From the NCBI GenBank assembly GCA_020184695.1, contig JAANOX010000052.1, positions 186,001 through 250,000 on the forward strand: 64,000 nucleotides of DNA, in the 5' to 3' direction. Of the stretch, positions 432 to 64,000 are shown in pieces. A program made the position numbers and the translations under genes. The notes below the pieces were generated by a model, which did no database searches, was not told where the DNA came from, and was given only the letters and a program-made list of their open reading frames with translations. Within the stretch, counting starts at the first letter, position 1, and each line of letters opens with the position of its first letter. The DNA comes from Histomonas meleagridis 2922-C6/04-290x. Lineage: Eukaryota > Protista > Parabasalia.

Positions 432-2170
432 TTATTTATATGAATTTCCAGTATCACTATCAATTCCTTCTTGTTCAAGAAGTATTTTAACTATTTCTGT
501 ATGTCCATTTTCAGATGCTCTAATAAGTGCTGTCTGAAATAATTTAAATTATTTTTAAATATTATTTTGAAATATCAAATTATTAAAATAAATATTAAAT
601 AAAACAAATAGATATCTTTAGCATTAATATCAATTCCTTCTTGTTCAAGAAGTATTTTAACTATTTCTGTATGACCTTTTAAAGATGCGTACATAAGTGC
701 TGTTCTAAATAATTTTAATAATTTCCAAATATTATATTGAAATATAAAATTATTAAAATAAATATTATCTTTAGCATTAATATCAATTCCTTCTTGTTCA
801 AGAAGTATTTTAACTATTTCTGTATGACCATTCCAAGATGCTTTAATAAGTGCTGTTTCAAATAATTTAAATTATTTCCAAATATTATATTGAAATATAA
901 AATTATTAAAATAAATATTATCTTTAGCATTAATATCAATTCCTTCTTGTTCAAGAAGTATTTTAACTATTTCTGTATGACCATTTAAAGATGCAAACAT
1001 AAGTGCTGTTCTGAATAATTTAAATAATTTCCAAATATTATATTGAAATATAAAATTATTAAAATAAATATTATCTTTAGCATTAATATCAATCCCTTCT
1101 TGTTCAAGAAGTAATATAACTATTTCTGTATAATCATACCAAGATGCTACAATAAGTGGTGTTCTAAATAATTTAAATTATTTCCAAATATTATTTTGAA
1201 ATATCAAATTATTAAAATAAATATCATCAATAACATTAATATCAATTCCTTTTTGTTCAAGAAGTAATTTAACGATATCTGTATAACCTTTTAAAGATGC
1301 TACAATAAGTGCTGTTTCAAATAATTTAAATTATTTCTAAATATTATTTTGAAATGCCAAATTATTAAAATAAATTTTATCTATAACACTAATATCAATT
1401 CCTTTTTGTTCAAGAAGTATTTTAACTATTTCTGTATAACCTTTTTCAGATGCCCATATAAGTGCTGTTCTAAATAATTTAAATTATTTCCATATATTAT
1501 TTTGAAATTCTATATTATTAAAATAAATATAAAATTAAACGAATAAATTTTATCTATAACATTAATATCAATTCCTTCTTGTTCAAGAAGTATTTTAACT
1601 ATTTCTGTATGACCATTCCAAGATGCTTCAATAAGTGCTGTTTCAAATAATTTAAATTATTTCCAAATATTATTTTGAAATATCAAATTATTAAAATAAA
1701 TATTATCTTTAGCATTAACATCAATTCCTTTTTGTTCAAGAAGTATTTTAACTATTTCTGTATAACCTTTTTGTGATGCGTACATAAGTGCTGTTCTAAA
1801 TAATTTTAATAATTTCCAAATATTATTTTGAAATTCTATATTATCAAAATAAATATCATCAATAACATTAATATCAATTCCTTCTTGTTCAAGAAGTATT
1901 TTAACTATTTCTGTATAACCTTTTTGTGATGCGTACATAAGTGCTGTTCTAAATAATTTTAATAATTTCCAAATATTATATTGAAATATAAAATTATTAA
2001 AATAAATATTATCTTTAGCATTAATATCAATTCCTTCTTGTTCAAGAAGTAATTTAACTATTTCTGTATAACCATTTTGTGATGCCAACATAAGTGCTGT
2101 ATTAAATATTTTAAATTATTTCCAAATATTATTTTGAAATATCAAATTATTTAAATTTATTTTATCTTTA
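432..2170 (-). repeat. Tandem array of 11 units (about 153-173 bp each) = ankyrin coding segment plus AT-rich intervening sequence
   Basis: TAL/TPL codons (minus strand) recur near 2097, 1944, 1791, 1638, 1465, 1312, 1159, 1006, 853, 700 and 530. Confidence 0.95.
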
Positions 2171-3320
2171 GCATTAATATTAATATTAATTCCTTCTTTT
2201 TCTATAATGGTTTTGATAAGTTCAACATTTCCAGATTCCATTGAAAATACTAAAATATTTTTTGGGATTTGGTTGAATTTAAGAAAATATTCGGTAAGAA
2301 ATAAATTTCCTGTTAATACAGCTTCATTAATAATATTGTCATTAATTTTCATGTCATTTTCTTGTAAATATGATAAAAGTTCATAATTATGATATACAAT
2401 ACATTTTTTCCCTAATTCTTCTAAATTCTTAATTTCTTTTAATTTATTCTCATAAAAATATTTAAAGATATCATTTCGATGAAACATAATTGCTGTTTCA
2501 TATGCATATTCAAATGATGAATGATTTTGTTCACATAAATGAATGATTTCTTCATTTCCACCTACAATCGCATATTTACCTGTATTATTTACGTTTGCAT
2601 TATTCATAAGTAAATATTTAAAACATTTAATAGATCCAAAGAATGCTGCATAATCAATTAATGAAACATTCTTTTGATTAATAAATGAACATCTTTCATA
2701 AAGTGATGGTTTAATTGTTTGATTATAATCAAAATTTGTTTGTGATGATATTTCTTGAAGTTTTTTTCCATTTCATCTTTTCGAATGATTTTCGCAATTT
2801 CATTCGGATTATGTCCTTCTTTAACATATTTCTTATGAAGTTTCCAATCATTTTTTGAAAGTTCTTCATAATTTACAATAAAATCATGTTCCCTTAAACA
2901 TGTTAATTGATATTTAGACATATAATGTGCAAAATAAGCACTATGACTATATTTGACAATGTTTGGTTCAAGAAAATTATGTTCAATCATAGCTTCAAGA
3001 AGATAAGATGATTCATTTGAATTTTTATTATTAAGAAATCGCCCAAATATATCAAATATATTAGATTTGATTTTATTACTCTCTTCAAATGTTCTTATTT
3101 CTTTTATAATATTCAAAAATAATTCAACATTAATATTTTTAATTACAAAGGAATAATATGTCATTTGAATAATCATTAAATCATAAGATAAAGGATGAAT
3201 TTTATCAAATTTCCTGATTATGAAACTTAAAGATTGAGAGAAATTTTCTTCATTCAAAATAAAAATTGCTTGGTTTATTAATAGAAGTGTTTCCCAGTCG
3301 CAATGTTCCTTTGATTTCAT
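432..3320 (-). CDS. DUF3447-type ankyrin-repeat gene 1: helical N-terminus plus 11 interrupted ankyrin repeats
   Basis: ORFs 2658-3320, 2116-2607 and 1657-2091 join into one gene (motif LIDYAAFFGSIKCFKYLL; one homopolymer frameshift near 2765). The repeats TALxxASxxGHTEIVKxLLEQEGIDINAKD end in IDSDTGNSYK* with the stop at 432-434. Confidence 0.85.
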
Positions 3321-3425
3321 GTGGAAAAATGAACCAGTTCAATTCTTCACAAGGGCAAGTAAACGGCATCCATTCAAAAAATAAACAATCAAAAAGTTTT
3401 ACTTCATTGTTTGATGAGAACATGG

Positions 3426-4293
3426 GTCAAAAAAAATGGCCTTGAAAATCTATTTATAAATTTAAAATAATACTTTATAATATGATATTTATCAATCAAA
3501 AATTCATATCTAAGGATTTTCCGCATAACGTTTTGAGGTATTTATATTTGAAAAATTGTTGAAAACACCTTACTTTGTTGCCTTTTGAGGTAAATTTCAT
3601 CGTCAAAATCTGAACCCGTTATTTCATTTATGAGTAATTTTTCGCCTCCGTGTACAAGAGGATTCCAAAACAGGAATTCACCAGTCTGTAATTCAATTGA
3701 GGCCAATCTAAAAGCAAAGATTTCGACTCTGCAAAGAAAAAATGAGCAATTGAAAAAAGTTATAAAGATGAACTTCAGCAAAAATCAACTTCAAATAACA
3801 AAAGTAGACAATAATAATGTAATTAAATCGTCGGAAAATTATCCTATTATGAACCAACATGTTTTGTCATTGTCTTCGAAAAGATATGACAAATCAATTA
3901 GAAGCGACTACATATTAATGTCAATGATCGGCAAATCAATGTGGGATTTGTCGAAAAAATGAGATTTCCAAGTTACAAAACAGTTAGAAGATGGATAGAA
4001 GAAGAATTTTCTCGTATAGGTTTATCTATGAATCTATTTAATGGTTCTTTATATAGTATTCAAAAGTTATCCGAATATTTTATTAACAATGATTTTAAGA
4101 ATGTCAAAATCGTTCTAGCAGTAGATGCTGCTGGGATAAAACCAAATGTAGTGATTCATAAAAATGGAAAAATTGATGGTTTACTAGATGAAGTGGAAAT
4201 TGAGCCAGATGAAATAACAGAATAAAAAAAATCACTTGAAGCCTTCAATGCTTTCATTGAAGCAAACAAAACCGATATTATTCATTATTATTA
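3426..4293 (+). mobile_element. Truncated, frameshifted P-element-superfamily-like DDE transposase remnant
   Basis: ORFs 3630-3962 and 3941-4225 give a coiled coil, then ..MRFPSYKTVRRW.. (like the P-type LPSxxTLxRW motif) and IVLAVDAAG (first catalytic Asp). The coding frame stops abruptly at about 4293. Confidence 0.55.
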
Positions 4294-5168: not shown

Positions 5169-8073
5169 TTATCCTTGTGAATCTTTTAATTTTATTATGT
5201 CGTCACATTTATGATGTTGAATTTTGTCTGCAAATAATCGAATAATTTCTGCATTTTTCTTTTCTGATGATATCATAAGCGCTGTTTTATATGTTTATAA
5301 GTAATTCCAAATGTTTATATGAAATTTCATATTTATTAAAAATATTTTAAATAAAACAAAAAAATATTTTTAGCATTAATATCAATATTCTCTTGTTCAA
5401 GAAGTAATTTAACTATTTCTGTATAACCTTCATCAGATGCTCTAATAAGTGCTGTTTGAAATAATTTAAATAATTTCCAAATATTATTTTCAAATATAAA
5501 ATTATTAATATAAATTTTAAATCAAACAAATAAATATCTTTAGCATTAATATCAATTCCTTTTTGTTCAAGAAGTAATTTAACTATTTCTGTATGACCAC
5601 ATAAAAATGCTAAAATAAGTGCCGTAAAAAATAATTTAAATAAATTCCAAATATTATTTTGAAATATAAAATTATTAAAATAAATATCAAATAAAACAAA
5701 TAAATATTTTTAGCATTAATATCAATATTCTCTTGTTCGAGAAGTAATTTAACTATTTCTGTATGAACATCTCTAGATGCTCTAATAAGTGCTGTTTGAA
5801 ATAATTTAAATAATTTTCAAATATTTTTTAAGAAATATAAAATTATTAAAATAATTATTAAATAAAACAAATAAATATCTTTAGCATTAATATCAATATT
5901 CTCTTGTTCGAGAAGTAATTTAACTATTTCTGTATGAACATCTCTAGATGCTCTAATAAGTGCTGTTTGAAATAATTTAAATAATTTTCAAATATTTTTT
6001 AAGAAATATAAAATTATTAAAATAAATATCAAATAAAACAAATAAATATTTTTAGCATTAATATCAATATTCTCTTGTTCGAGAAGTAATTTAACTATTT
6101 CTGTATGAACATCTCTAGATGCTCTAATAAGTGCTGTTTGAAATAATTTAAATAATTTTTCAAATATTTTTTTAAGAAATATAAAAATTATTAAAATAAA
6201 TATCAAATAAAACAAATAAATATTTTTAGCATTAATATCAATATTCTCTTGTTCGAGAAGTAATTTAACTATTTCTGTATGAACATCTCTAGATGCTCTA
6301 ATAAGTGCTGTTTGAAATAATTTAAATAATTTTCAAATATTTTTTAAGAAATATAAAATTATTAAAATAATTATTAAATAAAACAAATAAATATCTTTAG
6401 CATTAATATCAATTCCTTTTTGTTTAAGAAGTAATTTAACTATTTCTGTATGACCATCTCTAGATGCTTTAATAAGTGCTGTTTCAAATAATTTAAATAA
6501 TTTCCAAATATTATTTTGAAATATCAAATTATTAATATAAATTTCATTTTTAGCATTAATATCAATTCCTTCTTTTTCAAGAAGTAATTTAACTATTTCT
6601 ATATGGCCTTTTTTAGATGCTAACATAATTGCTGTATCATATAATTTAATTAATTTCCAAATATTATTTTGAAATATCAAATTATTAATATAAATTTCAT
6701 TTTTAGCATTAATATCAATTCCTTCTTTTTCAAGAAGTAATTTAACTATTTCTGTATAACCATTTTTTGAAGCATTTGTTAGTGCTAAAAATATTTAAAA
6801 AAAAATTTAAAAATTTTTATGAAACAATGAAATATTTTAATAAAAATCCAATAAAATAAACAAATAATCTTGCTAAAATCAATGTATCTATTGTTAATTA
6901 AATAGTTATAAAGTTCCACATTTCCAGAAAAACCCGAAATTTTCAAAAAATCAATAGGAATATGATTACTTTCGAGAAAATATTGAGTAATATATAAATT
7001 CCCTGTTATGATTGAAGCAATGAGAGTATTTTCATTTATTTTCATTCCTTCTTTAAGTAAAAATGATAAAAGTTCATAATTATCATGTAAAACACATTTT
7101 GCTCCTAATTCTTCTAAATTCTTAATTTCTTTTAACTTATTATCATAAAAATATTTAAAGATATCATTTCGATGAAACTCTATTGCTGCTTCATATGCAT
7201 CTTTAAATGTTGTGATTTTGTTCACATAAATGAATTATTTCTTCATTTCCACCTGCAACTGCATATTTACCTGTTTTATCTAATTTTGCTCCATTCATAA
7301 GTAAATATTTAAAACATTTAATTGAAGAAAAAAATGCTGCATAATCAATTAATGTAACATTTTTATGATTAATAAATGAATATCTTTCATAAAGTGATTT
7401 TGCAATTGTTTGATTAAAATCAAAATTTGTTTCTGATGATATTTCTTGAAGTTTTTCTATTTCATCATTCCGAATTATTTTCGCAATTTCATTCTGATTT
7501 ATTCCTTCTTTAACATATTTCTGATGAAGTTCCCAATTATTCGCTTTAAGTTTTTCAAGGTTTTTGGAGAAATATTCAGAAAATTGATAACGATGGTTTA
7601 AAACGAAATGTGCTTTAAAATGTGAAAAAAATAAATTTTTCATATTTTTAGTAATCGATGAGTTAATTAAACCTTTTTCTATCAACTTTCCGATAAGATA
7701 ATTAGTTTCTTGTGAGTTATTTTTCTGATTTTTTTGATAAAAATTGTCAATTATTGAAACTTGATTTTTATTTACATCTCGTTCAATTAAATTCAAAATA
7801 AATGAAACGGCAGATGATCAAGTTGAATGAATACGTTCGTGAATTATCATAAAATTCGCATAATGAAGAAACAGATGTATCAAGATTGTTTGTATTTATG
7901 TTATAAATTATTTCTGTAAGTGCAATTAAGTCTGGAAAGGAATTTATCTTTGATGAACTCATTCCAATACTATTAAATAACACTTGAAAAAATTTTAATG
8001 GACATGTGATATGAATTTTTATATAAGATTGTAATAAATAAAAACATAGAATGAACTTCATGATGAAATCCAT
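5169..8073 (-). CDS. DUF3447-type ankyrin-repeat gene 2 with 10 interrupted repeats; two frameshifts in the 5' part (errors or pseudogene)
   Basis: ORFs 7783-8073, 7203-7796 and 6785-7225, then the repeats. The terminal capping repeat KTALMISSEKKNAEIIRLFADKIQHHKCDDIIKLKDSQG* ends at 5169. Confidence 0.8.
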
Positions 8074-16800: not shown

Positions 16801-17050
16801 TATTTTTAAATATGTCAAAAAAAATTGTGAATTTTAAATTATGCCATAATGACCAAACTGAACAACGTAAATTAACGGTCATTCTATGAACAAAAGATTC
16901 ACAATTATTTGATGGGTTTCTTGATTTTTTATTTTTAGAACTCTATCATAGAGGCCTTCTATGGGAGGTTGACATTTTTTTCCAATTTATTACTCATGTT
17001 TCATCAAACAATGAAGTAAAACTTTTTGATTGTTTATTTTTTGAATGGAT
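16801..17050 (+). repeat. ~240-bp dispersed element upstream of ankyrin gene 3
   Basis: Homologous to 9905-10140 (inverted) and to the split copy at 3330-3425 plus 4284-4350. Confidence 0.9.
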
Positions 17051-19804
17051 GCCGTTTACTTGCCCTTGTGAAGAATTGAACTGGTTCATTTTTCCACATG
17101 AAATCAAAGGAACATTGCGACTGGGAAACACTTCTATTAATAAACCAAGCAATTTTTATTTTGAATGAAGAAAATTTCTCTCAATCTTTAAGTTTCATAA
17201 TCAGGAAATTTGATAAAATTCATCCTTTATCTTATGATTTAATCATTATTCAAATGACATATTATTCCTTTGTAATTAAAAATAATAATGTTGAATTATT
17301 TTTGAATATTATAAAAGAAATAAGAACATTTGAAGAGAGTAATAAAATCAAATCTAATATATTTGATATATTTGGGCGATTTCTTAATAATAAAAATTCA
17401 AATGAATCATCTTATCTTCTTGAAGCTATGATTGAACATAACTTTTCTTGAGACCAAACATTGTCAAATATAGTCATAGTGCTTATTTTGCACATTATAT
17501 GTCTAAATATCAATTAACATGTTTAAGGGAACATGATTTTATTGTAAATTATGAAGAACTTTCAAAAAATGATTGGAAACTTCATAAGAAATATGTTAAA
17601 GAAGGACATAATCCGAATGAAATTGCGAAAATCATTCGAAAAGATGAAATGGAAAAACTTCAAGAAATATCATCACAAACAAATTTTGATTATAATCAAA
17701 CAATTAAACCATCACTTTATGAAAGCTGTGATTTTATTAATAATAAAACAGTATCATTAATTGATTATGCAGCATTCTTTGGATCTATTAAATGTTTTAA
17801 ATATTTACTTATGAATAATGCAAACGTAAATAATACAGGTAAATATGCGATTGTAGGTGGAAATGAAGAAATCATTCATTTATGTGAACAAAATCATTCA
17901 TCATTTGAATATGCATATGAAACAGCAATTATGTTTCATCGAAATGATATCTTTAAATATTTTTATGAGAATAAATTAAAAGAAATTAAGAATTTAGAAG
18001 AATTAGGGAAAAAATGTATTGTATATCATAATTATGAACTTTTTATCATATTTACAAGAAAATGACATGAAAATTAATGACAATATTATTAATGAAGCTG
18101 TATTAACAGGAAATTTATTTCTTACCGAATATTTTCTTAAATTCAACCAAATCCCAAAAAATATTTTAGTATTTTCAATGGAATCTGGAAATGTTGAACT
18201 TATCAAAACCATTATAGAAAAAGAAGGAATTAATATTAATATTAATGCTAAAGATAAAATAAATTTAAATAATTTGATATTTCAAAATAATATTTGGAAA
18301 TAATTTAAAATATTTAATACAGCACTTATGTTGGCATCTAAAAATGGTTATACAGAAATAGTTAAATTACTTCTTGAACAAGAAGGAATTGATATTAATG
18401 CTAAAGATAAAATAAATTTAAATAATTTGAAATTTCAAAATAATATATGGAAATAATTTAAAATATTTTACACAGCACTTACTTGGGCATCTAAAAATGG
18501 TTATACAGAAATAGTTAAAATACTTCTTGAACAAGAAGGAATTGATATTAATGCTAAAAATATTTATTTGTTTTATTTTGGATTTATTTTAATAATTTAT
18601 TATTTCAAAATAATATTTGAAAATTATTTAAATTATTTTACACAGCACTTATTAGAGCATCTTTAAAAGGTCATACAGAAATAGTTAAAATACTTCTTGA
18701 ACAAGAAGGAATTGATATTAATGCTAAAAATATTTATTCGTTTTATTTTGGATTTATTTTAATAATTTAATATTTCAAAATAATATTTGGAAATTATTTA
18801 AATTATTTTATGCAGCACTTATGAGTGCATCTGAAAAAGGTTATACAGAAATAGTTAAAATACTTCTTGAACAAGAAGGAATTGATATTAATGCTAAAGA
18901 TAATATTTATTTTAATAATTTGGCATTTTAAAATAATATTTGGAAATTATTTAAATTATTTAGAACAGCACTTATTGATGCATCTTCATATGGTCATTCA
19001 GAAATAGTTAAATTACTTCTTGAACAAGAAGGAATTGATATTAATGCTAAAGATAATATTTATTTTAATAATTTGGCATTTTAAAATAATATTTGGAAAT
19101 TATTTAAATTATTTAGAACAGCACTTATTGATGCATCTTCATATGGTCATTCAGAAATAGTTAAATTACTTCTTGAACAAGAAGGAATTGATATTAATGC
19201 TAAAGATAAAATAAATTTAAATAATTTGAAATTTCAAAATAATATATGGAAATAATTTAAAATATTTTACACAGCACTTACTTGGGCATCTAAAAATGGT
19301 TATACAGAAATAGTTAAAATACTTCTTGAACAAGAAGGAATTGATAGTGATACTGGAAATTCATATAAATAAATTGAATAACGATCTAAATTTATATGTG
19401 CATATTATTATTATTTAATAATAATAAAAAATTCTGAAGAAATATTTTATTCATGAATAATTAAATATAAAAATATGATTAACAACAAATATTTTATCCA
19501 AGAAGATTATCAAGCCATTCATCAAGACTTTTTCTTGTTTTATTTCTTCTTGTTGAGTGTTTATTTCTTGTGTTTGTTTTTGACGTTGAAAAAAAGATTG
19601 ATTAATTTCTGATTCAAGTGTTGGAACAGGAACTAAAAAAACCATTTGAAAGTTGATCTTCGAGATGAAAGTTCTCGAAGAACTTCTGAAAAATCTTGGT
19701 TAAGTTCGTCCATCGTTTCAACTATTTCTTTGGTAAATAGTAATTGGCGTGTACAATTAGAAATCGTTGAATGAAGTAATTCTAAGTTTCTATTATTTGT
19801 GTCT
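16995..19804 (+). repeat. Inverted segmental duplication of 1-3425
   Basis: Near-identical in the promoter, N-terminal coding region, last repeat and 3' neighbour gene. The internal repeat arrays differ. Confidence 0.93.
17098..19372 (+). CDS. DUF3447-type ankyrin-repeat gene 3 with 7 interrupted repeats (paralog of gene 1)
   Basis: ORFs 17098-17451, 17448-18065 and 18019-18303. TAL/AAL codons at 18319, 18472, 18642, 18812, 18966, 19118 and 19271. Ends IDSDTGNSYK* at 19370-19372. Confidence 0.85.
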
Positions 19805-37052: not shown

Positions 37053-37705
37053 ATACTGAGTTTATGTATTAAAAGCATGCTTAAACATTTCTGATTTCAT
37101 TTGTTTCAAACGATATATTTTTGAATCATGTTTCTGTGGTTTATGAACGTTTGACAGTTTCGGAACGTTATTTCGATACATCTTTGGAAGATTCAAATTA
37201 CAAATAGCTTCCTGCGATTAAATTAACCTCATTGACTTGTCCTCAGTTACGCTTGGTGTTTTGTATTTTTGATATTTAATTGAACATCAAAATTCCTACT
37301 TTCTTCAAAAAAACATCTTTAACGATAGAATCAAATGAATGAGTCATCATCGGATTTATATTCAAAAACTGATGTGTTTGGGAAACCTTTCTGAAACCAC
37401 TTTATATTCGGAAACGAAGGAAAGGAGCAAAAACCTTTTACAATATCATATTCATTAATCAATTTTTATTAATGTAATATGAGTTAGTATTGATCCCTCT
37501 GTTGAAAAATGATCATATTGTTGTTGAATTTTATGGTAATTCTTATGAAGTATTCCATCTGTAGAAATGGTAATTGAATACAAAAAGCAGTTATTGGAAC
37601 TTCTTATCGTTGCCATAATTCTGAGAATTTTTTCGTGCTTAAGAACATTTGAATGAAAATAAGATGTGAACAAATTTGAATGAAAAAGCAAATGTCAGTT
37701 TTCGT

Positions 37706-40700
37706 ATGAGCTTTTTCTCGAATTTGTTCAAAAAAGAAGAGGCCCAACAACCTCCGCCTAATCACGATAATCAAGCAAAACCAGAGGAAAATGGTTCTCA
37801 AATTCAAGAACTTCAAAAGCAAGTTGACTATTATAAACAAAGGTCACTTACAGATGAAGAACTAAACGAATTCGAAATGCTGCGTACGCAGAAAAAGTTA
37901 TTTAGTGCCGAGATAGATCAACTTAACGAAGCTTTAGACAAGAAGCAAAGTGAAATAGATTCCTTAAACAAGCAAAATGAGGAAATAACAAATAGTGTTC
38001 GAACAGAAATTGAAGCTGTACAAAACCAAGTTGAAACAATAATGAAAACAAAGCAATCCGAAATCGAAAATCTTCAAAAGCAAATCAAAGATTTACAGAG
38101 TTCTAAACCATCAGAAGGAGGACAAAGTGTTCCATCTGAAACAAATAGTGCTGAAATAGAATCATTACAAAACAAAATCAAAGAATTGCAACATGATAAA
38201 GAAACTGAAATACAAAAACTTCAAACACAACTTTCTGAATCAGAGACAACGAAACGCACTGAAATTGATAGTCTTCAAAAGAAAATTGAAGAAATTACAA
38301 ATGACAAGCAAACTGAGATTGATTCATTACAGAAACAAATTGAAGAAATAACAAATAATAAACAAAATGAAATTAATTCATTACAAAAGAAAATTGAAGA
38401 ATTAGCAAATAATGAAAAAACTGAAATTAATGAGTTCCAAACGAAAATCGAAGAAATAGCAAAGGAAAAACAAAATGAAATCAATGAATTACAAAAGAGA
38501 ATCGAAGAATTAACAAAAGAAAAGCAAACAGAAAATGAAAAACTGCAAAAGAAAATCGAAGAACTAATGAACACTCAAGCAAATGAATCAGGAGCACTTC
38601 AAAGTCAATTAACTGAATTACATAAGCAAATCGAAGAATTAACAAATAGTAAACAAATGGAAACAGAAAAACTAAATAAACAAATTGAAGAAATTACAAA
38701 CAATAAACAAAATGAAATTAATGAATTAAATAAACAAATTGAAGAAATTACAAATAACAAACAAAATGAAATTAATGAATTACAAAAGAAAATCGAAGAA
38801 ATACAAAATAATAAACAAAATGAAATTGATACATTACAAAAACGTATTGAAGAATTAACTAATAATCAATCATCAGAAGCAAATGCATTACAAAGTAAAA
38901 TTGATGAATTACAAAATCAAATTAATGAAATAACAAATAATAAACAATCGGAAATCGATTCATTACATAAACAAATTGAAGAATTACAAAACAATAAACA
39001 AAATGAAGTTAATTCATTACAAAATCAAATTAATGACTTAACAAACAGTAGACAAAATGAAATTAATGAATTAAAGAAACAAATCGAAGAAACGACAAAT
39101 AACAAACAATCAGAGATTGATTCATTACATAAACAAATTGAAGAATTAGGAAATACAAAACAAAATGAAATCAATGAATTAAATAAACAAATTGAAGAAT
39201 TAACAAATAATAAACAAAAAGAAATTAATGAATTAAAGAAACAAATTGAAGAATTAACAAATAATAAACAAAATGAAATTAATGAATTACATAATCAAAT
39301 TGAAGAATTACAAAATAATAAACAAATGGAAACAGAGAAATTAAATAAACAAATTGAAGAAATTACAAATAACAAACAAAATGAAATTAATTCATTACAA
39401 AGAAAAATCGAAGAAATTACAAATAATAAACAAAACGAAATTAATTCATTACAAGGTCAACTTGAAGAACTTTCAAATAGAAAACGAATTGAAATTGATG
39501 AATTACAAAAACGTATTGAAGATCTTGCAGATGGTAAACAATCTGAAGCAGGCGCATTACAACTTCAAATTGTTGAATTACATAAACAAATCGATGAGAT
39601 AACAAGTAATAAACAAAATGAAATTAGACAACTTAATAAACATATCGAAGAATTAAATGATGAAAAGAATACAATGGAAGAAAATCATCGAAAACAAATC
39701 GATGATATTAATAAATCGAAATCAAATGAAATCGAAGAACTTACAAATGCAAAGCAAATAGAAATTAATAACTTAAAGAAACAAAACGAAGAATTAAATA
39801 CAGCTAAAGAAACATCAGAAAATGAATACAAGAAACAGATTGAAGAATTAAATAACTCTAAAACAGCTTCAGAAAATGAATATAAGAAACAAATCGAAGA
39901 ATTAAATACTTCTAAAACAAATGCAATTGAAGAACTTACAAATGCAAAGCAAACGGAAATTGATCAACTTAAACAACAAATTGAAGAATTAGGTAGTAAT
40001 AAACAATCAGAAATCGATAACTTAAAGAAACAGAACGAAGAATTAAACGCATCTAAAGTAACAGCAGAAGAAGAATTAAAGAAACAGATGGAAGAATTAG
40101 GCAACAACAAACAAAATGAAATTGATAACTTAAAGAAACAGAACGAAGAATTAAACGCAGCTAAAGAAGCATCAGAAAATGAATATAAGAAACAAATTGA
40201 AGAGTTAAATGCAGCCAAAGTTTCGGCGATTGAAGAACTAACAAACACCAAACAAAATGAAATTGAACAACTCAAACAACAAATCGAACAAATCAATTCA
40301 GCCAAAGCGGCATCAGAAAGTGAACTACATAAACAAATTGAAGAACTCTCTAATGCAAAAGCATCAGAAAGTGATGTTGTAAATCTCAAACAAAATGAAA
40401 TTAATTCTCTTAAGCAACAGATCGAAGAAATCAACAATTCTAAAACAGCATTAGAAAGCGAATTACATAAACAGATCGAAGAACTCAATAATTCTAAAGC
40501 AGCAGCAGAAGAAGAATTAAAGAAACAAATCGAAGAATTAAAGAACTCTAAAACTGCTTCAGAAGAAGAATTAAAGAAACAAATTGAAGAATTAAGTGCA
40601 TCTAAAGCAGCAGCAGAAGAAGAGCATAAGAAACAGATCGAAGAATTAAAGAACTCTAAAACTGCTTCAGAAGAAGAATTAAAGAAACAAATGGAAGAAT

Positions 40701-41803
40701 TAGGTAACAACAAACAAAACGAAATCGATAACTTAAAGAAACAGAACGAAGAATTAAACAACTCTAAAACAGAATCAGAAAATGAATATAAGAAACAAAT
40801 CGAAGAGATAAATACAGCCAAAGTTTTAGCAATTACTGAACTAACAAACACCAAACAAAATGAAATTGAACAACTTAAACAACAAATCGAACAAATCAAT
40901 TCAGCCAAAGCGGCATCAGAAAGCGAATTACATAAACAAATTGAAGAACTCTCTAATGCAAAAGCATCAGAAAGTGATGTTGTAAATCTCAAACAAAATG
41001 AAATTAATTCTCTTAAGCAACAGATCGAAGAAATCAACAATTCTAAAACAGCATTAGAAAGCGAATTACATAAACAGATCGAAGAACTCAATAATTCTAA
41101 AGCAGCAGCAGAAGAAGAATTAAAGAAACAAATCGAAGAACTGAACGCATCTAAAGCAGCAGCAGTTGAAGAAGTAACAAACGCAAAGCAAAATGAGATC
41201 GATCAACTCAAGCAGCAGATCGAGCAAATCAACGCATCCAAAGTGGCATCGGAAAGTGAATTACATAAACAAATCGAAGAACTGAACGCATCCAAAGCAG
41301 CAGTTGAAGAGGCGACAAACGCGAAGCAAACTGAGATCGATCAACTCAAGAAGCAAATCGACGAGTTGAACACATCCAAATCGACAGCCGAATCGGAACT
41401 TGCGAACACCTCCACACTTAAGAAGGAGCTCGAATCGAAAGAAGCGGAAACAACAGAGCTACAGCGCCAAATCGAAGAGTTATTCCTGCTGAAGGAGCGC
41501 GAAACTGCAGAACTCCGCAAAGAGATCGAAACATTAAATAACAATAAGAGTAATGTAAACGAAGAAGAAATTAATAAAATTAAAGACGAACGTAACGAAG
41601 CACAAACAAAAGTTGCGCAACTCGAAGATGAAATTAAAGACCTTCGCGAAGTGGCGAAGAAGTACACAACAATTAAAGACGAAAAAGATGAAATGTTCAC
41701 ACATCTGAAGGCTGAAATAGAAGAGTTGACACGACAAAACGAACAGTTGAAAAATACCGTGTTGGAAGCAAAGGCAAAAATTCGTGAAAAAGGATTAAAA
41801 TAA
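37706..41803 (+). CDS. Long repetitive coiled-coil protein (18-aa NNKQNEINELxKQIEEL-type repeats)
   Basis: E/K/Q/N-rich. The ATG at 37706 follows an Inr-like TCAGTT. Contains an internal ~600-nt tandem duplication. Confidence 0.88.
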   Translation: MSFFSNLFKKEEAQQPPPNHDNQAKPEENGSQIQELQKQVDYYKQRSLTDEELNEFEMLRTQKKLFSAEIDQLNEALDKKQSEIDSLNKQNEEITNSVRTEIEAVQNQVETIMKTKQSEIENLQKQIKDLQSSKPSEGGQSVPSETNSAEIESLQNKIKELQHDKETEIQKLQTQLSESETTKRTEIDSLQKKIEEITNDKQTEIDSLQKQIEEITNNKQNEINSLQKKIEELANNEKTEINEFQTKIEEIAKEKQNEINELQKRIEELTKEKQTENEKLQKKIEELMNTQANESGALQSQLTELHKQIEELTNSKQMETEKLNKQIEEITNNKQNEINELNKQIEEITNNKQNEINELQKKIEEIQNNKQNEIDTLQKRIEELTNNQSSEANALQSKIDELQNQINEITNNKQSEIDSLHKQIEELQNNKQNEVNSLQNQINDLTNSRQNEINELKKQIEETTNNKQSEIDSLHKQIEELGNTKQNEINELNKQIEELTNNKQKEINELKKQIEELTNNKQNEINELHNQIEELQNNKQMETEKLNKQIEEITNNKQNEINSLQRKIEEITNNKQNEINSLQGQLEELSNRKRIEIDELQKRIEDLADGKQSEAGALQLQIVELHKQIDEITSNKQNEIRQLNKHIEELNDEKNTMEENHRKQIDDINKSKSNEIEELTNAKQIEINNLKKQNEELNTAKETSENEYKKQIEELNNSKTASENEYKKQIEELNTSKTNAIEELTNAKQTEIDQLKQQIEELGSNKQSEIDNLKKQNEELNASKVTAEEELKKQMEELGNNKQNEIDNLKKQNEELNAAKEASENEYKKQIEELNAAKVSAIEELTNTKQNEIEQLKQQIEQINSAKAASESELHKQIEELSNAKASESDVVNLKQNEINSLKQQIEEINNSKTALESELHKQIEELNNSKAAAEEELKKQIEELKNSKTASEEELKKQIEELSASKAAAEEEHKKQIEELKNSKTASEEELKKQMEELGNNKQNEIDNLKKQNEELNNSKTESENEYKKQIEEINTAKVLAITELTNTKQNEIEQLKQQIEQINSAKAASESELHKQIEELSNAKASESDVVNLKQNEINSLKQQIEEINNSKTALESELHKQIEELNNSKAAAEEELKKQIEELNASKAAAVEEVTNAKQNEIDQLKQQIEQINASKVASESELHKQIEELNASKAAVEEATNAKQTEIDQLKKQIDELNTSKSTAESELANTSTLKKELESKEAETTELQRQIEELFLLKERETAELRKEIETLNNNKSNVNEEEINKIKDERNEAQTKVAQLEDEIKDLREVAKKYTTIKDEKDEMFTHLKAEIEELTRQNEQLKNTVLEAKAKIREKGLK

Positions 41804-44548: not shown

Positions 44549-45007
44549 TCATCCACCACGAAGACGAAGAACAAGATGGAGTGTTGAATCCTTTTGGATG
44601 GAATAATCTTGAAGTGTGTTGCCATCTTCGAGTTGCTTACCAGCGAAAATTAAACGTTGTTGATCTGGTGGGATACCCTCCTTATCTTGGATCTTGGACT
44701 TAACATCTTCAATACGGTCAGTTGGTTCAACTTCAAGTGTAATGTGCTTACCTGTAAGGGTCTTGACGAAGATTTGCATACCACCACGAAGACGAAGAAC
44801 TAAGTGAAGGGTAGAATCCTTTTGGATGGAATAATCTTGAAGTGTGTTGCCATCTTCAAGTTGCTTACCAGCGAAAATTAAACGTTGTTGATCTGGTGGG
44901 ATACCCTCCTTATCTTGGATCTTGGACTTAACATCTTCAATACGGTCAGTTGGTTCAACTTCAAGTGTAATGTGCTTGCCAGTGAGTGTCTTGACGAAGA
45001 TTTGCAT
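44549..45007 (-). CDS. UB: Polyubiquitin (two units)
   Basis: Two copies of [27 protein letters not shown]...LRLRGG (trichomonad type). ATG at 45007. Confidence 0.98.
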
Positions 45008-45292: not shown

Positions 45293-45558
45293 TTATTTAT
45301 TACTAATCAATTCAACAATTTTTGTAAGATCTATTTGTGTTACATTCCATAATTGCATACATAAGTGCAGTTTAAAAAATTAAAAACAATTTTCAAATAT
45401 TATTTTGAAATAAATATTTCTCTTAATTATTAAGACAAATATTAAATAAAACAAATAAATATCTTTAGAATTCTAAGAAGTACCTTAATTACCCCCGGAT
45501 TATTTTCATCAATGCTTTCATAAGTACTGTTTTGAATGTTTAAAATAGTTTCCAAAAT
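45293..45558 (-). pseudogene. Orphan relic of two ankyrin repeats with the same loop insert
   Basis: Minus strand reads KTVLMKA... then AAAGATATTTATTTGTTTTATTTAATATTTG...TTTCAAAATAATATTTGAAA...ACTGCACTTATGTATGCA. Confidence 0.7.
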
Positions 45559-45588
45559 CCAAAAAAATTATGGGAAATCAGACTTTAT

Positions 45589-57633: not shown

Positions 57634-57862
57634 ATCCTTGGCAAACGACGTGAGCCCCATTGAGTTAGACCTCGAAAGGCCCAATTCGATATCTCTATAA
57701 ACAGACAAACTCATTGGCGAAATATCCCTAAAGATCATCTAAAGCCAATGGTCGCAATCATAGCCTACACTCTCTGCTATTGTCTGGGGACTTTCCCGAG
57801 GGATGTAGAAGAAACAAGTTCTTCAGTGTGTAACCCTCATCGAATTCGCGCTCGCCAAGAAT
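57634..57862 (-). ncRNA. RMRP: RNase MRP RNA
   Basis: Minus strand has P1 (ATTCTTGGCGAGCG pairing with CGTTTGCCAAGGAT), TACACACTGA, CR-I GGGAAAGTCCCC, a P8 GCA-GAGAG-TGT GARAR loop, and CR-V ACTCAATGGGGCTCAC. Confidence 0.92.
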
Positions 57863-61303: not shown

Positions 61304-64000
61304 ATGGAATTTGGCGAGACTCAAAAAAGGAATATATCAAATCAAATTTTAATATATGAATTATATGACAAAAATTATCCATATACAGTTTTTTTGATAA
61401 CATGTCGATTAGTGTATTCATCTTTTGTTTCTCAAATGAAAGATTTTAAAATTTATTTTAATTTTTTAAGATTCTTGGAGAAAATATATGAGGAAATATG
61501 TAATTATAAAATGATGGATATTTTCTCAAGATATCTTTTTTCTCTAACTTCTCAAGAATCACATTACCTTTTAGATGAAATGTTTGATCAAGGAATGATT
61601 GATGAAACAGAATTAACCAAAAAAAGTTGTTTATATTTCGCACAACATATGAAAAAAAATGAAATCAACTCATTAACTATTGATCGGGCCAGTAAAGATG
61701 ATATTAAATCTAATCAGTTTAATGAATCTTTTTTAAAAAATTATGAAGAACTTTCAAAAAACAATTGGGCACTTCATAAGCAATTAATCAAAGAAGGAGT
61801 TAATCCGAATGAAATTGCGAAAATAATTCGAAATGATGAAATAGAAAAACTTCAAGAAATATCATCACAAACTGATTTTAATTATAATCAAAAAATTGAA
61901 CCATCACTTTATGAAAGATGTTCATTTATTAATCAAGAAAATACGACATTAATTGATTATGCAGCATTTTTCGGATCAGTTAAATGTTTTAAATATTTAC
62001 TTATGAATGGCGCAAAATTAGAAAACACAGGTAAATATGCAATTGCTAGTGGAAATATAGAAATCATTCATTTATGTGAACAACATCATTCATCATTTTA
62101 TGATTCATATGAAGCAGCTATTGAATTTCATCGATATGATATCTTTAAATATCTTTACGAAAATAAAATTGTTAAAACTATGCATTTAAATTTTTTATAT
62201 AAAAAATGTATTGTAAATAATTCATATGAAATTTTTTCATATTTGCTTGATAAAGAAGGATTGAAATTAGAAGCTTTCATATATGAATTGTCATCAACTG
62301 GAAATTTATATCTAATAAAATGTTTTTTTGAAGAATATCAATTACCAAATGATATATTTGTTTCTTGTGCAAGCTCAGGAAATATTGAACTTGTTAAATA
62401 TTTTCTTTATAAAAAAATTGATGTTAATGTAAGTAATGTCTCTTTGAAAAATTGGGAAATTGTTTATATTTCATTATGTTTCATATAAGTATTTGGTGAA
62501 TATTTAAGTTTTTTGACACAGCTTTGTTTCTAGCATCTGAAAATAAACATTTAGAAATCATTAAATTACTTGTTGAACAAAAAGGAATTGATATTAATGC
62601 AAAAAATATTTATTCGTTTTATTTAATAAATATTATAATATTTCAAAGTTTCAAAACAATATTTGGAAATGACTTAAATTATTTGATACAGCACTTATAT
62701 ATGAATCTGAAAATGGTCATGAAGAAATAGTCAAATTGCTTCTTGAACAAAAAGGAATTAAAATTAATGCTAAAAATAAAATTTATTTTAATAATTTGAT
62801 ATTTTAAAATAATACATGGAAATTACTTAAATTATTCGATACAGCACTCACAAAAGCATCTAGTTATGGTAAAATAGAAATAGTTAAATTACTTCTTGAA
62901 CAAAAAGGAATTAAAATTAATGCTAAAAATAAAATTTATTTTAATAATTTGATATTTTAAAATAATACATGGAAATTACTTAAATTATTCGATACAGCAC
63001 TCACAAAAGCATCTAGTTATGGTAAAATAGAAATAGTTAAATTACTTCTTGAACAAAAAGGAATTAAAATTAATGTTAAAAATAAAATTTATTTTAATAA
63101 TTTGATATTATAAAATAATATTTGGAAATTATTTAAAATATTTGATACAGCACTTATGAAAGTATCTTCAAAAGGTCATACAGAAATAGTTAAACTACTA
63201 CTTGAACGAAAAGAAATTGATATTAATGCTCAAGATATTTATTTGTTTTATTTAATATTTGTTTTAATAATTTAGAATTTCAAAATAATGTTTGGTAATT
63301 ATTTAAATTATTTTATACAGCACTTATGAAAGCATCTAGAAATGGTTCTATAGAAATAGTTAAATTACTTCTTGAACAAAAAGGAATTGATATTAATGTT
63401 ATAGATAATATTTATTTTAATAATTTAGAATTTCAAAATAATGTTTGGTAATTATTTAAATTATTTGAAACAGCACTTGTTTGGGCATCTGAAAATAATC
63501 ATGAAGAAATAGTTAAATTGCTTCTTGAACAAAAAAAGGAATTAAAATTAATGCTAAAAATATTTATTTGTTTTATTTGATGTTTATTTTAATAATTTTA
63601 TATTTCAAAATAATATTTGGAAATTATTTAATACAACACTTATTTGGGCATCTAAAAATGGTCATACAGAAATAGTTAAATTACTTCTTGAACAAAAAGG
63701 AATTAAAATTAATGCTAAAAATAAATTTTATTTTTAATAATTTAGAATTTCAAAATAATGTTTGGTAATTATTTAAATTATTTGAAACAGCACTTGTTTG
63801 GGCATCTGAAAATAATCATGAAGAAATAGTTAAATTAAAAAAAAAAAAAAAAGGAATTGATATTAATGCTAAAGATATTTATTTGTTTTTATTTTGGATT
63901 TATTTTAATAATTTTATATTTCAAAATAATATTTGGAAATGATTAAAAATATTTAATACAGCACTTATTAATGCATCTTTAAATGGTCATACAGAAATAG
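61304..64000 (+). CDS. DUF3447-type ankyrin-repeat gene 4 with at least 10 interrupted repeats (runs off window end)
   Basis: ORF to 62488 with LIDYAAFFGSVKCFKYLL. TAL/TTL codons near 62518, 62688, 62841, 62994, 63147, 63317, 63470, 63632, 63789 and 63958. Confidence 0.87.

Follow-up and report, generated by a model that had tools for sequence, protein, structure and literature searches.

A 64-kb stretch of the genome of the parabasalid Histomonas meleagridis 2922-C6/04-290x (contig JAANOX010000052.1, positions 186,001 to 250,000 of the forward strand; hereafter the window, with positions counted from its first letter) carries four arrays of ankyrin repeats, A1 to A4, in which the repeats are interrupted at their loops by short, A/T-rich intervening sequences. 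The G+C content per kb ranges from 18 to 39% across the window and is mostly ~25%, and under the standard code there are long uninterrupted open reading frames (ORFs), including those for a BspA-type leucine-rich repeat protein and for DUF3447 + ankyrin proteins (Pfam), a combination that we take to be a parabasalid signature. Tandem Repeats Finder identified periods of 153 and 170-171 nt in the four arrays. The repeat unit is a 30-codon scaffold, T-A-L...E-I-V-K-x-L-L-E-Q-x-G-I-D-I-N-A-K-D/N, which is followed by an almost pure A/T stretch. The scaffold pieces match the Pfam Ank model (PF00023) with E = 6e-10 to 3e-7 at model positions 4-33, and since the match starts at position 4 the scaffold is without exactly the loop residues; the DUF3447 profile match has E = 4e-10. 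An earlier note on this DNA had counted 38 interrupted units in four ankyrin genes, and that count is closely matched: there are ~38 loops, of which 37 were located and 36 parsed, and no uninterrupted ankyrin loop was found on either strand of the window. Parts of the window are also present in chicken-gut and bird metagenomes. The arrays are the following:

440-2163, minus strand: array A1, 11 loops with 35 pieces of 17 nt; the twin of A3, fully in frame when decoded.
5286-6830, minus strand: array A2, 10 loops, five of them parsed cleanly.
18235-19372, plus strand: array A3, 7 loops with 23 pieces; the array in which the interruption was noted.
62400-64000, plus strand, continuing beyond the window: array A4, 10 loops.

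The lengths of the intervening stretches were determined for 35 automatically anchored loops and are 63 nt (20 loops), 80 nt (8 loops), 81 nt (4 loops) and 83, 84, 64 and 71 nt (one loop each), so that all four lengths reported in the earlier note (63, 80, 81 and 83 nt) were found again; the first loop of A2 (83 nt) and the first loop of A4 (89 nt by hand count) bring the number of located loops to 37. These lengths follow a simple arithmetic, in that 63 = 3x17+12, 80 = 4x17+12, 83 = 4x17+15 and 89 = 4x17+21, and in 30 of the 36 parsed loops the length is a multiple of 17 nt plus whole codons. What sets the 80-nt class apart from the 63-nt class is one more 17-nt piece, which sits precisely at the junction of the D/N codon and the codon after it; the flanks are identical. 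In a column profile of the distinct stretches, which is free of any model, both G+C and variability are concentrated in four 3-nt slots that lie 20 nt apart (mean G+C in the 63-nt class of 0.35 in the slots vs 0.024 elsewhere), and among equally spaced four-slot placements the 17-nt spacer gave the top slot G+C in the 63-nt class and was tied for the top in the 80-nt class. Read as codons, the slots yield KDGN, KEGY, WNGY, NGGR, NYGR, DDGR, EDGE and the like, and the third of the four residues is Gly in 24 of 29 parsed loops; the pattern of the ankyrin hairpin loop is D-x-x-G-x-T-A-L. A path search in which only stop-free codons and 17-nt skips were permitted gave an open path through A3 that runs from 18094 to the stop at 19370 and uses 23 skips, and one through A1 that runs from 2772 to its stop and uses 35, spurious skips past the stop being set aside. 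When a general codon/skip path search was run with a high penalty on skips, 17 did not stand out, as 11, 14 and 20 were also open at lower scores, and because that search was not selective the case for 17 nt rests on the length arithmetic, the slot profile and the decoded loops. We are highly confident that the stretches are made of three or four separate 17-nt pieces that alternate with four retained loop codons in phase 0.

This anatomy alters several of the descriptions from which the analysis started. The xxGx loop had been thought to be replaced by the A/T stretch; instead, its four codons are retained, as the G+C and variability of the 3-nt slots and the Gly of the third one indicate. 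A single intervening sequence of 63-83 nt had been assumed as the unit of removal, where we would now place a string of 17-nt pieces between single retained codons. The TAA at 18301-18303 does lie in frame, GT is indeed absent from the 63-nt class, and ACAG is, as was claimed, lost in several units (ACACCA at 1163, ACGGCA at 5626 and ACAACA at 63633), but the reading of ACAG as a 3' site has to be given up, as these letters are simply the Thr-Ala codons of the next scaffold. Gene A3 (17098-19372, plus strand) is resolved part by part as follows, and its loop 6 is an identical copy of loop 5:

17098-18255, plus strand: N-terminal DUF3447/ankyrin part, up to the first NAKD (three-frame reading, start approximate); Pfam DUF3447 and Ank_2 match the ORF at 17448-18065.
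18256-18318, plus strand: loop 1; AAA (K), piece 18259-18275, GAT (D), piece 18279-18295, GGA (G), piece 18299-18315, AAT (N).
18409-18471, plus strand: loop 2; AAA (K), piece 18412-18428, GAA (E), piece 18432-18448, GGA (G), piece 18452-18468, TAC (Y).
18562-18641, plus strand: loop 3, four pieces; piece 18562-18578, TGG (W), piece 18582-18598, ATT (I), piece 18602-18618, GAA (E), piece 18622-18638, TAC (Y).
18732-18811, plus strand: loop 4, four pieces; piece 18732-18748, TGG (W), piece 18752-18768, AAT (N), piece 18772-18788, GGA (G), piece 18792-18808, TAT (Y).
18902-18964, plus strand: loop 5; AAT (N), piece 18905-18921, GGC (G), piece 18925-18941, GGA (G), piece 18945-18961, AGA (R).
19055-19117, plus strand: loop 6; AAT (N), piece 19058-19074, GGC (G), piece 19078-19094, GGA (G), piece 19098-19114, AGA (R).
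19208-19270, plus strand: loop 7; AAA (K), piece 19211-19227, GAA (E), piece 19231-19247, GGA (G), piece 19251-19267, TAC (Y).
19271-19372, plus strand: C-terminal capping repeat and stop (TAA at 19370-19372), by translation; A1 has the same cap and flank.

In order to compare transcripts with genomic DNA, contigs assembled from RNA runs X5, X6 and X7 and from DNA run X1 were aligned at 90% likeness over positions 17400-19500; the runs that contain the window agree with H. meleagridis as its source, and they comprise four DNA runs of 2021, from two samples of one study, and RNA runs of 2023 that bear the same organism label. Fourteen of the 15 best-supported joints lead from a scaffold end or first loop codon to a scaffold start or last loop codon, with 5-12 letters between the two sides. 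Their left sides lie at 18406-18411, 18559-18562, 18731-18732, 18904 and 19057 and their right sides at 18316-18319, 18640-18642, 18962-18965, 19153-19154 and 19271. All 14 were identified in the RNA runs and, among the joints listed, none in a contig of the DNA run. Where the letters between the sides are given, they make up, together with the retained codons, exactly four in-frame codons (for example CAA GGT GAT TTT, GAA TGG GGA AAA, and AAT + TGT GGA AGA). Loose ends of contigs at the loop edges tell the same story, in that all 16 from RNA continue into loops made only of codons (e.g. GAT AAT GAT GGA AAA ACA GCA CTT) and the six from DNA keep the insert sequence. The depth of the loop bin 18252-18322 relative to the scaffold bin 18323-18393 is 0.011, 0.024 and 0.011 in RNA runs X5, X6 and X7, respectively, and 0.26 in DNA run X1; for 18579-81 relative to 18690 the corresponding ratios are 0.017, 0.114 and 0.023 in RNA and 2.7 in DNA. 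Relative to the scaffold, insert-bearing sequence is thereby ~10- to 200-fold rarer in RNA than in DNA.

Individual loops of A3 give further detail. At loop 1 two RNA contigs (X5 record 14 and X7 record 30, 0 mismatches) agree with the genome as far as 18258, where the first loop codon, AAA, ends, with the second carrying 5 further non-fitting letters beyond it, and a DNA contig (X1 record 5) continues into the piece, to 18267. The exact RNA fit ending at 18258 places the 5' edge between 18258 and 18259, as predicted, and excludes a cut at the scaffold end, 18255. At loop 2 the RNA joints and loose ends begin at 18408/18411 and lead into four-codon loops; at loop 3 a joint from 18559 to 18642 was found in RNA only; at loop 5 a joint from 18904 to 18962, which skips 57 nt (17+3+17+3+17) and agrees with the outer edges of that loop, was present in X5, X6 and X7 but not in X1; and at loop 6 the RNA loose ends at 19057 go on as xxG-x-ACAGCACTT. 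Contigs from paralogs vary at the slots, for instance with AAT in place of TGG at 18579-81 (loop 3) and 18749-51 (loop 4).

The pieces are present in DNA and for the most part missing from RNA, and a normal ankyrin loop is re-formed by the single codons that are kept. The claim with which the analysis began, that the inserts are removed and not retained, is borne out by the insert-free joints of the RNA runs and by the depletion of insert sequence vs DNA, and we consider it likely that the removal takes place at the RNA level. The check that had been proposed, a mapping of RNA that imposes no splice motif, was made with contigs and did find scaffold-to-scaffold junctions, although mostly at the level of the gene family and with some inserts retained.

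A total of 96 pieces, 35 of them distinct, were parsed in the window, and they fall into four position classes (ATTTATTTGTTTTATTT, ATTTATTTTAATAATTT, ATTTCAAAATAATATTT and AATTATTTAAATTATTT). Their G+C content is ~3.5% and their consensus is ATTT...ATTT, with A at position 1 in 95 of the 96 and at position 14 in 93, and T at positions 15, 16 and 17 in 94, 86 and 92. All cleanly parsed pieces are 17 nt long, namely these 96, four in the first loop of A4 and 24 in relatives. No GT-AG borders were found in the 96 pieces, nearly all of which start with A and end with T. There was no match in the window, with one mismatch allowed, to the parabasalid 3' motif RCTAACACAYAG, and the U12-type 5' site ATATCC and branch site TCCTTAAC are absent from the pieces, which start ATTT or AATT. 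No conserved splice-site sequence was identified among the diverged copies, which have in common only a 5' purine followed by T-rich sequence. The statement that the inserts are not canonical parabasalid GT-AG introns is therefore upheld on three counts: they are without GT-AG, without the 3' motif and 17 nt long. Six loops with their flanks fold no better than shuffled sequences (z from -0.9 to +1.4), while weak A-U structure is possible; loops of the IRE1 type need G residues, and these are missing from the pieces. Direct repeats at the edges are absent from 38 of the 96 pieces and a single nucleotide long in 41; the possibility of a template-switch artifact of reverse transcriptase was rejected on this ground, the edge repeats being only 0-1 nt in 79 of 96. 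Divergence between pieces of a class (0.07-0.13 per site) is similar to the synonymous divergence of the scaffold (0.10-0.12), which implies that the sequence of the pieces is not obviously more constrained than silent sites, though their length is kept.

A search with the N-terminal ORF identified 13 homologs of 50-70% identity, all in gut-metagenome assemblies. The five that were inspected end at AKD and then read through the insert, and the repeat period in the relatives' contigs is 170 nt. All six of the loops parsed in relatives are 80 nt long and have the layout 17-3-17-3-17-3-17-3, giving DLGN, SDGR, NDGC, NNGK, NSGK and DDEK; a choice among parses by G+C is ambiguous there, and it is the regular 17-3 alternation alone that gives xxGx each time. 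The relatives' pieces are diverged in sequence, often start with GTTT and end in TTT, ATT, AAA, GTT, TAA or CAC; two with an apparent T start acquire an A start by a one-base slide that leaves the protein unchanged. Judged from these sequences, the features kept across relatives are the length of 17 nt, phase 0, an A/T-rich composition and, at the 5' end, a purine with T after it. As the relatives come from short-read assemblies of other samples, the layout is no artifact of the present assembly. One of the metagenome contigs with interrupted ankyrin genes (L003) also encodes a DDE transposase of the IS1595 family (PF12762; 3399-4373, minus strand). A scan of metagenomes with the scaffold-end string returned only unrelated organisms with ordinary uninterrupted loops, among them two JGI metagenome contigs (L006 and L009, 25% G+C, from unrelated A/T-rich organisms) in which the 24-nt string GGAATTGATATTAATGCTAAAGAT is followed by an ENG-x loop and no insert.

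There is support at the sequence level for the view that the ankyrin part behaves as coding sequence. No stop was found in the 37 scaffolds, in agreement with the claim that the flanking 30 codons stay open under coding selection. The claim that scaffold changes are only conservative was not sustained, as pN/pS is 1.3-1.4 overall, with amino acid variation limited to scaffold positions 4, 5, 8, 9, 11 and 12, all of which lie on the surface of the repeat; the segments T-A-L, A-S, G, E-I-V-K, L-L-E-Q and I-D-I-N are nearly invariant. Such a pattern would fit diversifying selection on a fixed framework and not drift. A dN/dS of about 1 had been named as a sign of pseudogenes; the ratio measured here is 1.3-1.4 overall, and the framework is nearly invariant. 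What a decayed unit looks like can be seen at 45330-45580 (minus strand), where a solitary ankyrin unit has stops in the scaffold, drifted piece lengths and one piece that is ~9 nt longer; its different appearance speaks against decay of the arrays. This unit is intergenic, between a small basic ORF and what is presumably a polyubiquitin gene (44553-45007, minus strand: a tandem repeat of two copies, 95% alike, with a period of 228 nt, which we take to be the size of the ubiquitin unit).

To explain these observations, we propose that three or four autonomous micro-introns, each of 17 nt and in phase 0, make up every stretch in the arrangement D^x^x^G^x or D x^x^G^x, and that they would be transcribed and then excised so that the single-codon exons are joined and the mRNA encodes the D-x-x-G-x-T-A-L loop. 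The cut sites would be set mainly by a length ruler, aided by the purine-U start at the 5' end and by A/U richness, and GT-AG and branch-site motifs would not be what places them. Each piece is probably removed singly, because the unit of gain and loss is one piece and its edges lie at single codons. The machine could be the spliceosome, acting on introns of the smallest size it can handle, where distance or geometry and not AG would determine the 3' cut. The explanation as a whole, that is, length-defined 17-nt micro-introns between single codons that are cut from RNA, perhaps by the spliceosome, is the one that we favor, with moderate confidence. That the spliceosome performs the removal is a guess, to which we give slightly less than an even chance. 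We lean towards it because it is, to our knowledge, the only general machine for excising internal segments of nuclear mRNAs, because there are spliceosomal precedents of 15-21 nt, and because of the purine-T 5' end and the frequent GT in relatives; against it are the absence of GT-AG, of an ACTAAC-type branch motif and of a fixed A in diverged copies, and the 3-nt exons.

Several observations count against this interpretation and need to be set beside it. Some contigs in the RNA runs bear inserts, and these, together with the insert words in the same runs, imply that unspliced RNA or contaminating DNA is present. Sampled words of 18562-18811 were present at 0.43-0.52 in the RNA runs and 0.76-0.91 in the DNA runs, and with RNA runs so rich in insert words their presence or absence is no measure of splicing. 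The gene family is very large, and at 90% likeness most of the joints will come from paralogs, and where a joint does match this locus exactly, the intervening letters are given as not known; a search of protein collections with the N-terminal ORF returned only genomic metagenome homologs that end at the first insert and no locus-exact spliced sequence. The RNA and DNA runs are from different studies. Six of the 36 parsed loops have off lengths (81, 84, 64 and 71 nt); they deviate by 1-2 nt at homopolymer runs and could be errors of the Nanopore-based assembly or real breaks. Finally, three single letters of A3 have no counterpart in A1, namely a C at 17442, a G at 17452 and a T in the T-run at 18040-18044, and each of them breaks the frame.

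The last of these points concerns the twin genes. A1 (440-3460, minus strand) and A3 (16990-19500, plus strand) are inverted, near-identical gene copies that differ at 18 positions over ~1.3 kb comprising the N-terminal part and the first repeat and have the same C-terminal cap and 3' flank, although A1 has 11 repeats vs 7 in A3, with differing loop codons. A1 in turn carries two extra A at 2766-2767. Some of the single-letter differences fall into homopolymer runs and, the assembly being Nanopore-based, may be errors, but the extra letters at 17442 and 17452 are outside such runs. The sole RNA contig at that place is without the letters at 17446 and 17452, at or beside the extra letters of A3, and may come from A1. 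It may be that A3 is a recently disabled twin, and the phenomenon is independent of that.

Irregularities of other kinds are seen in A2 and A4. A2 has four nearly identical units (6392-5796, minus strand) with a third piece of 18-19 nt (ATTTCTTAAAAAATATTT), loops of 81/84 nt and Val in place of the conserved scaffold Gly, which reflect either one event copied by unit duplication or a systematic homopolymer error; its first loop (83 nt, with a T9 run) gave no clean or convincing parse. The first loop of A4 (89 nt) parses as 4x17 nt plus 7 codons, and two of its pieces begin with GT. The distal units of A4 are damaged: their loops measure 71, 64 and 81 nt, and one scaffold contains a poly-A run, in that ~16 A at 63836-63852 (plus strand) stand in place of part of it (LLEQKG) and the loops that follow are off-length. 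Either a problem of the assembly or true damage close to the end of the window could account for this.

Among the alternatives, the strongest is that the pieces are removed from RNA by a non-spliceosomal route, in which both ends of a piece would be cut by an endonuclease and the exons joined by an RtcB-type ligase; a protein footprint, or small guide RNAs that pair with the few conserved piece classes, would direct the endonuclease to its sites. Such a route would need neither GT-AG nor a branch motif, an exact length would follow from a footprint or a duplex, a few guides could serve the four conserved classes that cover the 96 pieces here, and exons of 3 nt are awkward for the spliceosome. 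We nevertheless regard it as unlikely, since the loops showed no significant bulge-helix-bulge or stem-loop fold, G-containing loops of the IRE1 type are not to be expected in these sequences, and many guides would be required for the diverged copies that occur in relatives and in the last loop of A2; nor do we know of any such enzyme system for nuclear mRNAs. A more far-reaching proposal, which we put forward only tentatively, is that the Histomonas lineage has an undescribed, dedicated RNA-excision system that measures 17 nt and makes no use of splice-site dinucleotides, be it a mode of the spliceosome or a separate endonuclease-ligase machine; the retained codons are those of the ligand-contacting positions of the beta-hairpin, so that the layout might also allow regulated or combinatorial inclusion of codons of the binding surface.

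It is very improbable that the arrays are concertedly evolving pseudogenes and that the insert-free RNA contigs stem from other, uninterrupted ankyrin genes. The frame breaks upstream in both A3 and A1, the off-length loops and damaged scaffolds of A2 and A4, the overall pN/pS above 1 and the predominance of paralogs among the joints would all be expected of such arrays. However, insert-free joints and loose ends dominate the RNA runs and are missing from those listed for the DNA run, and the window holds no uninterrupted ankyrin loop vs ~38 interrupted ones. Furthermore, removal of the 17-nt pieces restores complete ORFs, the framework is invariant with variation at surface positions only, relatives with N-terminal proteins of no more than 50-70% identity still have the length of 17 nt, and the truly decayed unit described above looks different.

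Still less credence can be given to one non-canonical intron of ~51-68 nt per stretch, with a loop that is shorter or supplied from within (including a variant with a 9-nt micro-exon). A single excision per repeat would be simpler, and single long skips are what the aligner reports, but the RNA contigs have exactly four in-frame codons between scaffolds, G+C and variation lie in four 3-nt slots 20 nt apart and not in one block, and the exact RNA fit ends after the first slot codon and not at the scaffold end. Programmed bypass of retained pieces by the ribosome, for which phase 0 between whole codons would be natural, and deletion of the pieces from the DNA of expressing cells, as with the internal eliminated sequences of ciliates, are together equally implausible, the former given the insert-free junctions in RNA, the 10- to 200-fold depletion there and take-off and landing codons that do not match (e.g. 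AAA/GAT, GAT/GGA), and the latter given that no insert-free junction is among the listed joints and loose ends of DNA run X1 and that the DNA runs hold the inserts, with 0.76-0.91 of their words. Of the four routes that had been suggested from the outset, namely non-canonical introns, non-spliceosomal excision, DNA-level deletion and ribosomal bypassing, the RNA data favor those that remove the pieces from the transcript and disfavor the other two.

Two further features of the window were recorded. A scan with Rfam gave as its sole match an RNase MRP RNA gene at 57638-57859, minus strand (RF00030, 94 bits, E = 6.6e-25, full model length), and no small nuclear RNA or other clue to the machinery was found in it. 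An ORF of 1375 amino acids at 37676-41803, plus strand, consists of 54-nt (18-residue) repeats, is K/Q/I/E-rich and coiled-coil-like, and sits in a region of very strong A-over-T skew (0.35-0.50).

If our favored explanation is true, these would be intervening sequences defined by length and not by boundary motifs, and they would raise the question of how cut sites are specified with almost no sequence information and of what the minimal substrate of the splicing machine is. Exons of 3 nt every 20 nt are the densest alternation of introns and exons known to us. Gene finders and aligners that filter for GT-AG are blind to such pieces, and it is probable that a large ankyrin family in H. meleagridis and its gut relatives has been annotated as fragments or pseudogenes. 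With a length that is fixed and single pieces that are exactly present or absent from one repeat to another, the system lends itself to direct tests with minigenes.

Among known systems, bypass elements (phage T4 gene 60 and the mitochondrial 'byps' of Magnusiomyces) are likewise short, frame-breaking, A/T-rich inserts that do not appear in the protein, but they remain part of the mRNA and depend on take-off and landing codons that match, whereas the inserts here are missing from RNA contigs and their flanking codons do not match. Numerous nuclear introns without GT-AG occur as the non-canonical introns of Fritillaria and Oikopleura, which are handled by the major spliceosome, and as the non-conventional introns of euglenids. 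These are of variable length, the euglenid ones bring their ends together by base-pairing, in contrast to the loops here, for which no significant fold was found, and none known to us has one fixed length or is separated by single codons. Micro-exons of 3 nt have been described in Drosophila homothorax (PMC7392893) and in plants (PMC8831610). They too are single-codon exons that are correctly joined into the mRNA, but they are isolated, lie between long canonical introns and have dedicated regulators, whereas here three or four follow in a row, 17 nt apart.

Closer to home, the H. meleagridis genome, which was sequenced from two strains with Nanopore and Illumina reads, was reported to have one intron in at most 5-6% of genes and at most one per gene, and ankyrins are not mentioned (PMC8529796). 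The introns of Trichomonas vaginalis are of types A and B, with GT/AG borders, a 5' GYAYGY/GTWYWD site and a 3' motif of 12 nt, RCTAACACAYAG, with which the branch site is fused; in T. vaginalis and T. stableri they measure 23-196 nt, those of type B being T-rich and 23-25 nt long, and there is usually one per gene (PMC12316389). Current pipelines drop junctions that do not have the extended trichomonad motifs (PMC12316389). These canonical parabasalid introns are from the same lineage, and type B is similarly short and T-rich, but they are at least 23 nt long and carry motifs, whereas the pieces here are 17 nt long and have none of those motifs. A description of 17-nt pieces with single-codon exons was not found in the literature covered, which leaves out most subscription journals. 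The nearest counterparts are the spliceosomal introns of fixed short length in mikrocytids (16-17 nt), Stentor among the heterotrich ciliates (15-16 nt) and chlorarachniophyte nucleomorphs (18-21 nt), which have highly conserved sequences and lie between ordinary exons (PMC10245619). Unlike them, the pieces described here have neither GT-AG nor a motif that is conserved in diverged copies, and they occur in strings with 3-nt exons and, so far, in ankyrin loops only. What they share with these introns is a length that falls within the very narrow span of 15-21 nt and hardly varies, A/T richness, removal at the RNA level and high numbers in a compact or intron-poor setting.

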